This document shows positions 36,504-42,129 of a stretch of DNA of 64,000 bases, in pieces; position 1 is the stretch's first letter; each line of letters begins with the position of its first letter. The notes below the pieces were generated by a model. The model had not been told where the DNA came from. It ran no database searches and saw nothing but the letters and a program-made list of their open reading frames with translations. The position numbers and the translations under genes were made by a program. The DNA comes from Salpingoeca rosetta. Taxonomy: Eukaryota > Protista > Choanoflagellata. Location: NCBI GenBank assembly GCA_033442325.1, contig JAWQFM010000003.1, forward strand, positions 1,561,063 to 1,625,062, read 5' to 3'.

Positions 36504-38988
36504 AATTGCAAATACATCGCTCGTGGACAATGGAGCAAAACACAAAATTCAGGCACATGTTCACAACGTGCACACACACACACACATGCACGCGAACTCA
36601 CACAAGCACGTAAGAAAACATTCGGTTCCAAGTATACACGCCCACACTGCAACAGTCCACGTGTGGGCGCATGCAACGTACTTCGATGTCTGCGAGCATA
36701 TCTGCGCCAACCCGCTGGTAGTAGGTGTTGCCGGTTGCACGGTAGAGCATGTACGTGGACTCCACCGCCTCTGGCCGCAGCGGATATGTGGTAACGTCTG
36801 GCTGGCGGGTGCGGAAGTTGTATCGCTCGGGCATGGCGTGGAAGCGGCGCCAGAGGGCGTGCAGGACCTCGTGGTCAACAACTGCACCGCGCACGTCGCC
36901 CCGCAGCACCTGCGGCCATGGTGATGATGGTGATGATGGTGGTGATGGTGGTGATGGTGGTGGTGGTGTCGTGATTAATGGGAGAGGGAGCGAGACGTAC
37001 AGGTGGGACAGACATGTTTGGCATGACAGACTACATTCACTGCAGGACGGAAGGACGATGGTAAATAGGAAACCACACACACACACACACCACAAACAAA
37101 CACACACACACATGCACTCAAGCACACCCATCCACACAATCGTGCTTTCACACACATTCACACACACATTCACACACACATTCACACACACATTCACACA
37201 CACATTCACACACACATTCACACACACCTTGAGTGCTGGGAGGAATGCCTGCAAGCTGTCGATCCACGGCGCAACAAGGCGACCGGAATACATGTCCACC
37301 TGTCCGTACAGCGGGAGATTGGGCAGGCGCGTGCGGTGCTGTGCTGCTCCAAACGCCGTCTCAAACAGCGACGCCAGCCCTTCGTCCTTGAACAGGATGG
37401 ACCCCTGTTGTATTTGCACGGTTGTCGTGTGCGTGTGACATGAGTTTGTTTTGTAGTTGTGTAAGTGTGTGTATGTGTGTGCATATGGAAGTCGACGTTG
37501 AAAAATGCGTGTAGATGCACACAACATGCAATACTCGACGTGTACACATGTGCACCGTGAGTCCAGCAACCCATGTGTGTGTGCGTGTGTCTGTCTGTCT
37601 GTCTGTGTCTGTGTGTGTGTCTGTCTGTGTGTGTGTGTGCGTGTGTGTGTGTGTGTATCTGTGTCTGTCTGTCTGTGTGTGTGTGTGTCTGTGTCTGTGC
37701 GTGTGCGTGTGCGACCTTGAGGAGGTATTCGAAGAAACTGTCAACGCCAGCACCAAATCCCGACATGGTGTTGATCCACCGGCCCGTGTGCACGTCGATT
37801 GTGTTTCCCAGCAGAAGGGTGCGCTCGCTGTTGAGAACAGAGGAGAAGACAGCAGTATGTAAATGTGGTGCGTGCATGTATGAGTGTGTGTGTGTGTGTG
37901 AGTGAGAGGGTATAGCCACAAACCAGCACCCCACAATCACACTCACACTCACACTCACACTCACACTCACACTCACACTCACACTCACACTCACACTCAC
38001 ACACACACACACACACACACTCACACTCACACTCACACTCACACTCACACTCACACTCACACTCACACTGGCTCGCACCTTCGATAGCTCCAGAGGGCGT
38101 GGAGGGCGCGGCGCGCGGCGCTCTCAAACGTGGGGTCGCCCGTCAGCCGGCTGAAGAATCCGGAAACAGACAGCCATGACACTCATATGAACCATCTCCA
38201 AAGTGCACACGTGCATGTGTACACAGATAACCTCAGATAACCTCCCCCCGACTCCTCTCACTCTCAAATATGCACACACTACTCCCCACCATACGGCAGC
38301 ATGCCTTTCGCTCACACCACCAACCAACCAACCAACCAGCCAACCCTGAAGACAAGCCCCTGCTCCACCGCTGTCACCTCACCTGAGCGCTCCGAATTCA
38401 AGTAGGAGGGAGCCTGCGGCGGCAGTGTTGGTGTCATTTCGCCAAAACGCCCCACGCGGAAGACCAGAGCGCAGGTTGACGCGGGGGAAGGGAAGGCCAG
38501 ACGCTGTCACGTCAAAGGCCGGCAGCAGGCGGGTGGCGAGGTCGCGGGCCATGTGCAGCAGCTCGCCATCGTACATGGGGTCGTGCAGCCCAAACGCAGG
38601 CGTTGTGGCCAGCATGTGCGCAGAGAGAAGCCCGCCAAGCATGCGGATGTTTGCTTCAAACACCTGCACGGTGGTGTCACGGTCAAAGGAGACGGTATCC
38701 ATGGCCAAACGCGCTGCCCGCCAAAACTCGCTGCTGTTGCCCATGACGGCAAGCGTGTCGAGCGTGTCGACCAGCGTCAGGCTGTAGTTCCCCAGCACGT
38801 CGTTGATGTTGATGTTGGTGCGGTCGGCGTCTGCTGAGCGCCCGCGGCAGTGGATCGGGTCCAGCTCATCATGCGGGAAGGCGTGTTGCATGTAGTTGTC
38901 GTACGCAAACGTGAACATGTGCCGCGCTCGCTCCCGGTATGCGGTGGCGTTGAAGGACGGCGACCAGGCATCATTGGACACCAAGCGG

Positions 38989-39045
<57 letters not shown>

Positions 39046-39443
39046 CGTCGTCTTCTCGTTCTTCCTCTTCGTCGCCTCCATTGTTGCGCTCCGCGTCCCT
39101 GTTGCTGCTGTTCCCTTTGCTTTCGCTGCTGTTGTTGTTCTGGCTCTTGTTGTTGCTCATGCTGCCGCTGCTCTTGCTGGCCATGTTGCTGTCGTAGCAC
39201 TGGTGACTGCGCGGGTTTGAGAGGCTCAGCTGGCAACACTGCCGGGTGACTGTCGGCTGCTGTGTGCGGTGCGGACATCGATGCCAGGTTGGCGTGGCGC
39301 TGAACTTGCGCTGTTGGGCCTGCCACATCTGCACGTGACGTGTCCATGTCGTTGTGAGGCGCAGACGCCGCCACGAGCAAGATGAGCGCACAAAGGGTCG
39401 CCAGCACGGCGCGCGGTCGCTGAGCCAGCCTGGTGCAAGCCAT
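35347..39443 (-). CDS. EDEM1: ER degradation-enhancing alpha-mannosidase-like protein (GH47), EDEM1-like, 8 exons
   Basis: Signal/anchor, then [140 protein letters not shown]; ends IKQLAGL* like EDEM1. Confidence 0.92.
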
Positions 39444-39888
39444 GGCGCAAGACCAGGTGCCGGAATCCCGCCTGGCCTGAACTGAATGAATACGAACGCT
39501 GAAGCTGAAACGAGGCTGCCGAGGCGCGGAGACGCCTGGTCGCAAATCGTCAATATCGCCGAGAGACGAAGAAAGAGAAAGAAAGCAACAGGAAAGAGGT
39601 GGTGGAAAGGGAGGAGGACAAGGAATGGGAGCAAGCGGTAGACGAAGAGGTAGACGAAGAACAAATAACAAACTCGAAGCACAGAGTTGATGGGAGAGCC
39701 GCTCAAAAGGGATTTGAGGGATGGAAGTCAAGACACACAAATGAAAATCAAGCGAGGCAGACAAGGGACTGGTATGTACAGATGGGATGGCTCAACTAAG
39801 AATTGAAACTGTGACAGGCTCGACGTATGAAGAGCTCAGACAGAGATGTGCACGGGGGTCATGCAAGAAATAACTCTTGCCCCTGTGT

Positions 39889-40374
39889 TCAGTTGTCCTC
39901 CAACAGAGATGCTTGCAGCGCATGCACCTACATGAGTGCCACCGATTGGAGGGAAACGAAAAAAAAAAAAACGAACAAGGCACGGACACAAGTGAAGAAA
40001 CAACCACAACGGGGGGGGGGGTGAGGACTGAGAGTTGCTTGCGATATGGTACCCAGTACATCACACGTGGCACAAAACCACAAGGAAACAACCAGGCACG
40101 GACTCAACACCACGCGCACAACACACACATTCACACAACACACACACATTCACACAACGCACACATTCACACACAAGCATACACACAAGCAGACACACAT
40201 TCACACCTGTTGGAGGAGGCCTGTGTTGGTGTGGGAGATGTCAATATTCAACACGTCACCCACGGTGATTGTGCCTGGGAGTAGGGCCAATGGGAACTTG
40301 ATTTCCACGTGGTCATCCGTCATCAACACAACAGTGACACCCTCATCCACCACACGCTGCACCACAACGCGCAT
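39889..40374 (-). CDS. 68-aa micro-protein resembling the Chs5 N-terminal (exomer dimerisation/ChAP-binding) module; 2 exons (40374-40207, 39927-39889)
   Basis: MRVVVQRVVDEGVTVVLMTDDHVEIKFPLALLPGTITVGDVLNIDISHTNTGLLQQ|VHALQASLLEDN*. Phase-0 intron CAG|gtgtga..tag|GTG with GT-rich content typical of this genome. Pattern LxTxDHxxIxFPxxLLP-x5-G and terminal (L/I)QAxxLE recall yeast Chs5 residues 1-77. Confidence 0.72.
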
Positions 40375-40474
40375 CTCCTCCAAACTAGCACACCACAGGC
40401 AGGAAGGAGAGGAACAAAGGTTGTGCGTGTTGCTTTGTTTGGTTGTGCGTGTGTCTGTGTCAGCGTTGGAGTGT

Positions 40475-40505
40475 GACTGAAATCAGTTACGACGACTGAA
40501 TTCAG
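40475..40505. promoter_or_regulatory. Two copies of the palindromic motif (GACTGAAATCAGT 40475-40487; GACTGAATTCAG 40494-40505) in a 150-bp bidirectional promoter
   Basis: Lies between the micro-gene ATG (40374, minus) and the DIS3 ATG (40525, plus). Confidence 0.5.
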
Positions 40506-40524: not shown

Positions 40525-42129
40525 ATGCTGCGAGCCAAGAAGTTTGCTCGGAAGACAAAGTCCGGCCGCGTGCTCACGGTGAGCAGGGAACACTACCTCC
40601 GTGATGACATCGGCTGCTCCATCCAAGGTATGCTGCTGGTGGAGATACTGCAAGTGCAAGAACAGTGTGGAGAGGGGGAATGGGGAGACAAGGGAGAGAG
40701 AGAAGGTAAGGAGGCAGAGACACGCATCGCGTACATTTTTGCTACGTGTGTGTGTGTGATTGTGTGTGTGTGTGTATCGCTCTGATTGCGAATGTGCTTG
40801 AGGGTCTGTCTGAAGGAAATGCACACTGTGGTGTTCATCATCTCGGAACGTGCACGCACAACTCGCACGCACAATCCTCACGCACAACTCGCATGCGTGG
40901 AATCTGTGTTGAATCAGGATGTGCGACATGCACCGTCAACCCAGACACGTTGGAGCCAACATCAATCATCCTGCCAGACACAAACGTCATCCTGCACCAG
41001 CTGGATGTGCTGGAGCACCAGGCCATCAAGAACGTGATCATCTGCTCCACCGTTTTGGATGAGGTGTGATGACTGCCCACATGCATCAAGGTGTCAAAAG
41101 ACACCAGCTGCGGTGGCACTGCCGGCGCTTCACAACCTCATTTCTCTCGCTCACATCATCTGCCCACGAATGATGCTTGTTTGCCTGTGTGGCGCCTGTG
41201 TGCCTGTGTTCGTGCATGTGACCGTGTGACCGTGTGTCTGTGTGTCTGTGTGTCTGTGTGTGTCCGTGTCTGTGTGCCTGTGTTCGTGCATTTGTGTGTG
41301 TGTATGACTGTGTGTGAAGGTCAAGCACCGCAGCCTTGCAGCCTACAACCGCGTGCGTGCCATGCTCTCGGACAAGAAGCGCCACTTCTACGTGTACAGC
41401 AACGAACATTCAAAGTAGGGCGTACTTTCAATGCGTATTTCTACCGATACATGCCACTGCTTCGCTGTGTGTATGTATGTGTACCCTCAGCGTTTAACAC
41501 ACGACTAACATGTTCGCCACACACACTCGCATACTCACGCACACACACTCACTCACCCCATACGCAGGCACACGTATGTGGAGCAGAACAAGGGCGAGTC
41601 TCCCAACGACCGCAATGATCGCGCCATTCGCGTGTGCGTCAAGTGGTACAACGACCACATCAAACAGGTGATGCCCACTGCCAAGGACGCCAAGGTGATC
41701 CTCCTCACCAATGACGCCGCAAACCTGAAGCTGGCGACCGCTGACGGTGGCATCCCCGGTTACACAGGTCAGCGCATGCACTGGGCAATTTTGAGGTTGG
41801 AAGATGGATTTTGTGCAGCTGAATGGTGTCAGGAACACCAGCGTTGCTTTTGCATTCACTCACCACCACCACCACCACGGCTCACGCATTGCTCTTGCTC
41901 ACACGCAACATGTACAACTTCATCCAACTCGCTTGCACACACACACACACACATACACAAATGCTTGGGTGCCCAGTACATGAGTACGTGCGCCGATTCG
42001 TGGATGATCCTGCTGTCAAAGATCTGCTCGCATATCCAAGCGACACCTTCTCAAAGTACGATGCCTGTGCCTTGACAACAAGTGACGTGAGCGTATGCGT
42101 GTGTGTGTGTGTGTGTGTGTGTGCGTGTC

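Follow-up and report, generated by a model that had tools for sequence, protein, structure and literature searches.

PTSG_11882, a spliced gene of Salpingoeca rosetta encoding a putative 68-residue member of the DUF3006/Chs5-N superfamily

A two-exon gene head-to-head with DIS3

The window analysed here is a 64,000-nucleotide stretch of the Salpingoeca rosetta assembly GCA_033442325.1 (contig JAWQFM010000003.1). On its minus strand, head-to-head with DIS3, lies a small gene of two coding exons. The coding part of exon 1 (40207 to 40374, minus strand) was delimited from the sequence and its open reading frame and has an RNA-seq depth of 4–15. It consists of 56 codons, Met1 to Gln56, starting from the ATG at 40374, and its 3' end at 40207 reads CAG ahead of the donor GTGTGA. 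The product of this exon is a β-rich domain with DH-x-x-I-x-FP-x-x-LLP and GDVL motifs, and the Pfam CHS5_N and DUF3006 matches discussed below both fall in it. The intron (39928 to 40206, minus strand; 279 nt, GT..AG), which is placed by the RNA-seq junction and by zero depth inside it, is GT-rich and has a run of T ahead of its TAG acceptor. The coding part of exon 2 (39889 to 39927, minus strand) adds 12 codons, Val57 to Asn68, and a TGA. It encodes the end of a C-terminal amphipathic helix, and its assignment draws on the sequence, both structure models and the alignment to Chs5. The spliced product is a 68-aa peptide, identical to the one given in an earlier, sequence-only reading of the window. 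Retention of the intron would place a TGA one codon past the donor and leave a protein that lacks the helix. From RNA depth and sequence, an approximate 5' leader without upstream ATG covers 40375 to 40470 on the minus strand, and the RNA depth profile and the next annotated gene indicate a probable 3' untranslated region at 39600 to 39888, also minus strand, the end of which is inferred.

The 40207/39927 junction that had been predicted from the letters was confirmed by 23 RNA-seq reads from three raw stranded runs (8, 12 and 3 reads), and it was also present in one transcript contig of a fourth run. Every junction read was oriented as minus-strand RNA would be, with GT..AG on that strand, and RNA depth inside the 279-nt intron was zero. 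PTSG_11882 is transcribed and efficiently spliced. Sequence, open reading frames and RNA-seq thus agree with the sequence-only reading on a two-exon minus-strand ORF that has canonical splice sites and stands head-to-head with DIS3. That reading had further supposed that the gene escapes gene finders, which proved mistaken: GenBank already lists the exact peptide, on GL832959.1, under the name hypothetical protein PTSG_11882 [Salpingoeca rosetta]. When the 55-Mb genome was scanned in six frames, no candidate for CHS5_N or for DUF3006 appeared apart from this locus, and PTSG_11882 is a single-copy gene. A small number of RNA reads in the reverse orientation map to 40172–40199, where they carry a G>T change at 40192 and continue into unrelated sequence, leaving loose ends at 40199. 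Their probable source is a further copy of the GT-rich repeat that occupies the intron.

On the plus strand, the start codon of DIS3 lies at 40525, 150 nt from the ATG of PTSG_11882. Minus-strand RNA depth fades over 40441–40495 and plus-strand depth, belonging to DIS3, begins at about 40496, so that both genes are transcribed from one divergent promoter region. The 5' ends of the two genes abut within about 50 nt (40440–40500 of the window). A de Bruijn transcript contig fuses the divergent PTSG_11882 and DIS3 into a single contig of 4 kb, a caution for transcript assemblies of the compact S. rosetta genome.

Downstream on the minus strand lies a GH47 (EDEM-like) gene, whose annotated start is about 542 nt below the PTSG_11882 stop. 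Its product (38379 to 39443, minus strand) resembles EDEM or α-mannosidase, has a signal-peptide-like start and carries a long poly-Q/R tract ahead of the catalytic domain; the annotated 730-aa product has no Pfam hit on record. Minus-strand coverage never falls to zero between exon 2 and the GH47 gene. Depth peaks at 39632–39739, dips by up to about 7-fold at 39416–39523 and rises again in the GH47 gene, a profile better explained by two transcripts and some read-through than by one transcript made up of leader and gene.

Family affinities of PTSG_11882

On the Pfam CHS5_N profile (PF16892), PTSG_11882 scored 29.5 bits (E-value of 7 × 10−7, profile positions 9–47 of 48), and on the Pfam DUF3006 profile (PF11213) it scored 25.3 bits (E-value of 1.7 × 10−5, profile positions 2–46 of 67). 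Both matches extend over almost all of the β-rich part. Neither score reaches the curated Pfam cut-off, which is 39.8 bits for CHS5_N and 32.3 bits for DUF3006. For comparison, yeast Chs5 scores 90–92 bits on CHS5_N, and the true bacterial DUF3006 members tested score 30–96 bits on DUF3006. Judged by these profiles, PTSG_11882 is an outlier of both families. None of the 151 bacterial DUF3006 proteins tested matched its CHS5_N score, the best of them reaching 25.0 bits.

A sequence search of the PDB gave yeast Chs5(1-77) as the best match (4WJW and 4IN3, E-values of 0.002–0.003), in an alignment that extends to residue 65 and so into the helix encoded by exon 2. With hhalign, PTSG_11882 matched the DUF3006 profile at 91% (E-value of 1 × 10−6) and yeast Chs5 at 68% (E-value of 5 × 10−5, residues 16–66), an uneven comparison because the Chs5 profile was built from two close sequences only. 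The likeness to Chs5(1-77), which had been proposed to run through the β-rich part and to be completed by exon 2, was therefore recovered across both parts by Pfam, PDB sequence matches and hhalign, and also by the fold match described below.

Closeness to Chs5 depends on the side from which it is measured. In pairwise phmmer searches from PTSG_11882, yeast Chs5 ranked third of 155 (21.6 bits versus a DUF3006 median of 10.2), behind two bacterial proteins. Searched from two yeast Chs5 N-termini, PTSG_11882 ranked only 38th and 76th of 152, the Chs5 side of these rankings being represented by Saccharomyces-type sequences. Many bacterial DUF3006 proteins scored above it from that side, at up to 28.5 bits versus 21.6. 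A metagenome scan with yeast Chs5 as the query returned Saccharomyces loci only. By language-model features in the ESM Atlas, DUF3006 clusters were nearest to PTSG_11882, with 97 of 100 hits and a score of 0.92. In terms of sequence scores, yeast Chs5 is no closer to PTSG_11882 than to bacterial DUF3006. What stands of the proposed CHS5_N-like identity is a profile match that exceeds chance (E-value of 7 × 10−7); it remains under the Pfam threshold, and the specific closeness to Chs5 did not hold.

The sequence-only reading had set DUF3006 against Chs5 as an alternative. This opposition dissolves, as the two form one superfamily: yeast Chs5-N aligned with the DUF3006 alignment in hhalign at 97% (E-value of 1 × 10−10) over 69 columns, including the helix. 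In addition, yeast Chs5(1-82) scored 26.6 bits on DUF3006 over profile positions 7–65 of 67. We gathered DUF3006 genes from 200 Bacillota genomes, 99 of which carried one. Weak CHS5_N matches were found in 93 of 151 DUF3006 proteins, made up of 11 of the 31 aligned members and 82 of the 120 further members. PTSG_11882, Chs5-N and DUF3006 (31 bacterial members aligned over their full length) are collinear. They have in common a first strand, an E-G/D-A turn, a second strand, F-x-x-P-x-x-L-L-P, G-D/S-V/I-L/I, a loop and a helix with a hydrophobic stripe, in that order. A solid by-product of these profile alignments is that the Chs5(1-77) core module of exomer is a full-length homologue of bacterial DUF3006. 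PTSG_11882 is best classed as a new, divergent eukaryotic member of the known DUF3006/Chs5-N superfamily.

The homology bears on the origin of Chs5, and it offers a first analogy for the structure and function of DUF3006, that of a dimerising, helix-docking adaptor. Our literature search found no paper mentioning DUF3006. Some DUF3006 proteins are misnamed in databases, as pyruvate kinase or as the tRNA A58 N-methylase Trm61, and a phage bin is the source of one such protein.

Searches for closer relatives of PTSG_11882 came back almost empty. A word-index search for homologues returned PTSG_11882 itself alone and, with yeast Chs5 added, only Saccharomyces Chs5 fragments. An exhaustive phmmer search of 1.8 billion representatives gave three repeat-protein artefacts and no true relative; with a 68-residue query about 36 bits are needed, a level that diverged orthologues would not reach. 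ORFs of only 68 codons are probably left out of many transcriptome proteomes. Scans of metagenomes and prokaryote genomes found no PTSG_11882 relative, more than 6000 bacterial DUF3006 proteins crowded the results of the mixed-alignment search, and the ESM Atlas with DUF3006 left out held no eukaryotic stand-alone cluster. In other ChAP-bearing eukaryotes no relative was found, by searches that are weak for 68 residues, and the eukaryotic genome scan covered S. rosetta alone. As no orthologue was found, there is no evidence of purifying selection. Neither the 1.8 billion representatives nor the prokaryote genome scan contained a bacterial protein matching PTSG_11882 at an E-value of 0.001. The lack of a near match among the representatives excludes a recent transfer; any transfer would be ancient.

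Predicted fold, homodimer and bacterial gene neighbourhoods

A single-sequence AF2 model was poor (pLDDT of 61) and was replaced by an alignment-based model. Built on a mixed alignment, the latter had a pLDDT of 71 overall, with 76–84 over the first 40 residues and a low 53–59 in the helix. It consists of four short strands (residues 2–9, 14–19, 24–28 and 41–43), a loop and an amphipathic helix at residues 51–66. This helix, the last part of which is encoded by exon 2, is present in both AF2 models. The six best Foldseek matches in the PDB were all Chs5 chains of exomer structures (4q66 and 4in3), with TM-scores of 0.60–0.63 over 65–70 columns and E-values of 0.005–0.012, followed by HypC and OB-type barrels. 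In a structure search of the ESM Atlas, DUF3006 reached a TM-score of 0.74 and Chs5 0.65–0.67. With moderate confidence, PTSG_11882 is predicted to have the Chs5(1-77) fold, a β domain followed by a C-terminal helix. The hydrophobic helix positions V57, L60, L64 and L65 align with F, I, I and L of the Chs5 helix, and they align likewise with the DUF3006 helix.

Modelled as a homodimer, PTSG_11882 scored 0.40 versus 0.00 for the best control, with at least 84% contact agreement between runs and a pLDDT of at least 71. The mark that the model thereby passes was reached by 21 of 30 solved homodimers and by none of 23 solved single chains, and the pass may reflect the model's memory of solved exomer structures. 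The modelled interface is symmetric and formed by residues 23–28 and 40–50, with residue 45 opposite residue 45.

Gene neighbourhoods offer a view of what DUF3006 proteins might do in bacteria. In 17 of 23 Bacillota loci, the gene directly upstream of DUF3006 encodes an MBL-fold hydrolase (Lactamase_B, ComEC-like), and many of these adjoining hydrolases have a lipoprotein-like N-terminus. This arrangement suggests that the two genes are a conserved unit and that DUF3006 acts on the MBL-fold enzyme as a partner or a restraint. The bacterial neighbourhood points to a partner-binding role for DUF3006 too, with a different partner. PTSG_11882 is flanked by DIS3 and the GH47 gene and not by an MBL-fold hydrolase, and a search of the S. 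rosetta genome with one bacterial query, which is weak evidence, found no ComEC-type MBL hydrolase.

A small dimerising adaptor and its possible partners

A 2018 survey found ChAP across eukaryotes and Chs5 in Fungi only, and left open the role and partner of ChAP outside Fungi. Published survey data list a ChAP of 957 aa for S. rosetta (PTSG_05874) and no Chs5; they also list ChAP for Monosiga brevicollis, Sphaeroforma arctica, Dictyostelium, Tetrahymena, Chlamydomonas and Guillardia, and none for animals, Capsaspora or Thecamonas. The literature is thus in accord with the premise of the sequence-only reading that Chs5 is fungal-specific and ChAP more widespread. Yeast ChAPs bind Chs5 through their TPRs.

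Our six-frame, exon-by-exon scan of this assembly with Pfam ChAPs (PF09295) yielded no candidate at any E-value. As a control, the long RNB model used in this way recovered the exons of DIS3 one by one. We attribute the blank ChAPs scan to low sensitivity for a gene that has diverged and is interrupted by introns; the ChAP of S. rosetta must either have diverged strongly or be encoded in short exons. Pfam fn3_2 (PF16893) had zero matches in the genome, and also zero in control genomes. As the sequence-only reading had noted, the protein is without FN3 and BRCT parts: it ends at residue 68, and the genome scan gave no fn3_2 match elsewhere. A split Chs5, with a separate gene for the FN3-BRCT part, was rejected on the same lack of an fn3_2 match.

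The explanation that we favour, and consider reasonably probable, is that PTSG_11882 is a genuine gene and that its product, a stand-alone DUF3006/Chs5-N member, acts as a small dimerising adaptor. Two copies would pair symmetrically through residues 23–28 and 40–50, as the N-termini of Chs5 do in exomer. The β domains would hold the two chains together and each C-terminal helix would dock on a partner, so that the dimer would bring two partner molecules together. Since docking in a ChAP TPR groove is the only eukaryotic precedent, and since a ChAP has been reported from S. rosetta, PTSG_05874 becomes the leading candidate partner within this explanation, although we give this assignment a fairly low probability. 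It makes PTSG_11882 a concrete candidate ChAP partner in a ChAP-bearing relative of animals. S. rosetta is amenable to genetic manipulation, so the candidate can be tested in that organism. Should the link to ChAP fail, an ordinary divergent small protein of known fold remains.

A more specific version makes PTSG_11882 an orthologue or ancestral form of the Chs5 N-terminal module, forming a (mini-Chs5)2(ChAP)2 core without FN3-BRCT in which the helices of the dimer would sit in the TPR groove of the candidate partner PTSG_05874. We regard it as doubtful. The CHS5_N score above that of every bacterial DUF3006 protein tested argues for it, but the CHS5_N threshold was failed. Yeast Chs5 stands third in pairwise score and PTSG_11882 scores on par with true yeast Chs5 on DUF3006, but the affinity is not reciprocated from the Chs5 side. 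The two proteins have in common the D-H and I-x-F-P-x-x-L-L-P core and the helix stripe F/V-x-x-I/L-Q-A-x-I/L-L; as the stripe and the LLP motif also occur in DUF3006, these do not discriminate. Chs5 chains as top fold matches, the passing homodimer model and a length that fits the fragment Chs5(1-77) used for crystals with Bch1 and Chs6 are all consistent with such a core, and so is a species that, according to the literature, has ChAP and lacks Chs5. Against this stand the blank ChAPs scan of the assembly and the lack of a detected homologue in other ChAP-bearing eukaryotes. With no Chs5-type FN3 in the genome, such a complex would also lack the Chs5 route to Arf1, and its membrane recruitment would have to differ.

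Taken one step further, S. rosetta may keep the ancestral, unfused core of exomer, a DUF3006-type dimer clamping two ChAPs by its C-terminal helices; we think this rather unlikely. If it were true, exomer-like sorting would predate Fungi, fungal Chs5 would have arisen by fusion of the core module to FN3-BRCT domains, and the widespread 'orphan' ChAP of protists would gain its first candidate partner. The mini-Chs5 reading is specific and cheap to test, and it would bear on how post-Golgi sorting evolved.

Less probable again is that a bacterial-type DUF3006 gene was taken up by horizontal transfer, gained an intron and diverged, with no relation to ChAP and with a bacterial-like role retained, in which the small protein would partner or inhibit another one. 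PTSG_11882 does have the stand-alone size and layout of DUF3006 (65–80 aa), its nearest language-model neighbours and best two pairwise matches are bacterial, and its GDVL and Q-R...E-G motifs are those of DUF3006 and not their Chs5 equivalents. DUF3006 is abundant in bacteria, where its gene is coupled to one for an MBL-fold hydrolase. However, at 25 bits PTSG_11882 scores far under any true DUF3006 member tested, it lacks the invariant D-R-F-E and D-x-E-E-T motifs, and the searches at an E-value of 0.001 gave no bacterial protein. DIS3 and GH47 as neighbours, and the blank search for a ComEC-type MBL hydrolase, also speak against a transferred unit. We consider it very improbable that PTSG_11882 is non-functional, as a leader or upstream ORF of transcripts into the GH47 gene or as a decaying relic with residual domain likeness: unbroken minus-strand coverage, one transcript contig that covers both genes and the lack of known orthologues would fit, but two independent significant profile matches, a full-length fold match that includes the exon-2 helix, a frame intact over a precisely spliced intron, the depth peak and dip ahead of the GH47 coding region and separate annotation in GenBank all argue for a gene.

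The two known systems nearest to PTSG_11882 are DUF3006 and Chs5-N. DUF3006 proteins are stand-alone bacterial and archaeal proteins of 65–80 residues and of unknown function. Like them, PTSG_11882 is stand-alone, at 68 residues, and has the same order of elements and the GDVL and E-G motifs. Unlike them, it lacks the nearly invariant D-R-F-E-G, E-G-D-V and D-x-E-E-T motifs. It has Q-R, a 2-residue insertion and E-G in place of the first, V-G-D-V in place of the second and no D-x-E-E-T. It also differs from DUF3006 in being eukaryotic, in having a spliceosomal intron and in having no adjoining MBL-fold gene.

In the fungal cargo adaptor exomer, Chs5-N (PDB 4IN3, 4WJW and 4Q66) forms the core for dimerisation and for the binding of ChAPs. 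PTSG_11882 differs from Chs5 in that it is without the Arf1-binding FN3-BRCT part, has GDVL where Chs5 has GSII, and carries a 2-residue insertion after the first strand. As in Chs5-N, a β-rich domain is followed by a helix, and the D-H, the I-x-F-P-x-x-L-L-P and the helix-stripe positions are present. PTSG_11882 is likewise predicted to form a symmetric homodimer, and, as in the setting of Chs5, it occurs in a species that has ChAP according to the literature.
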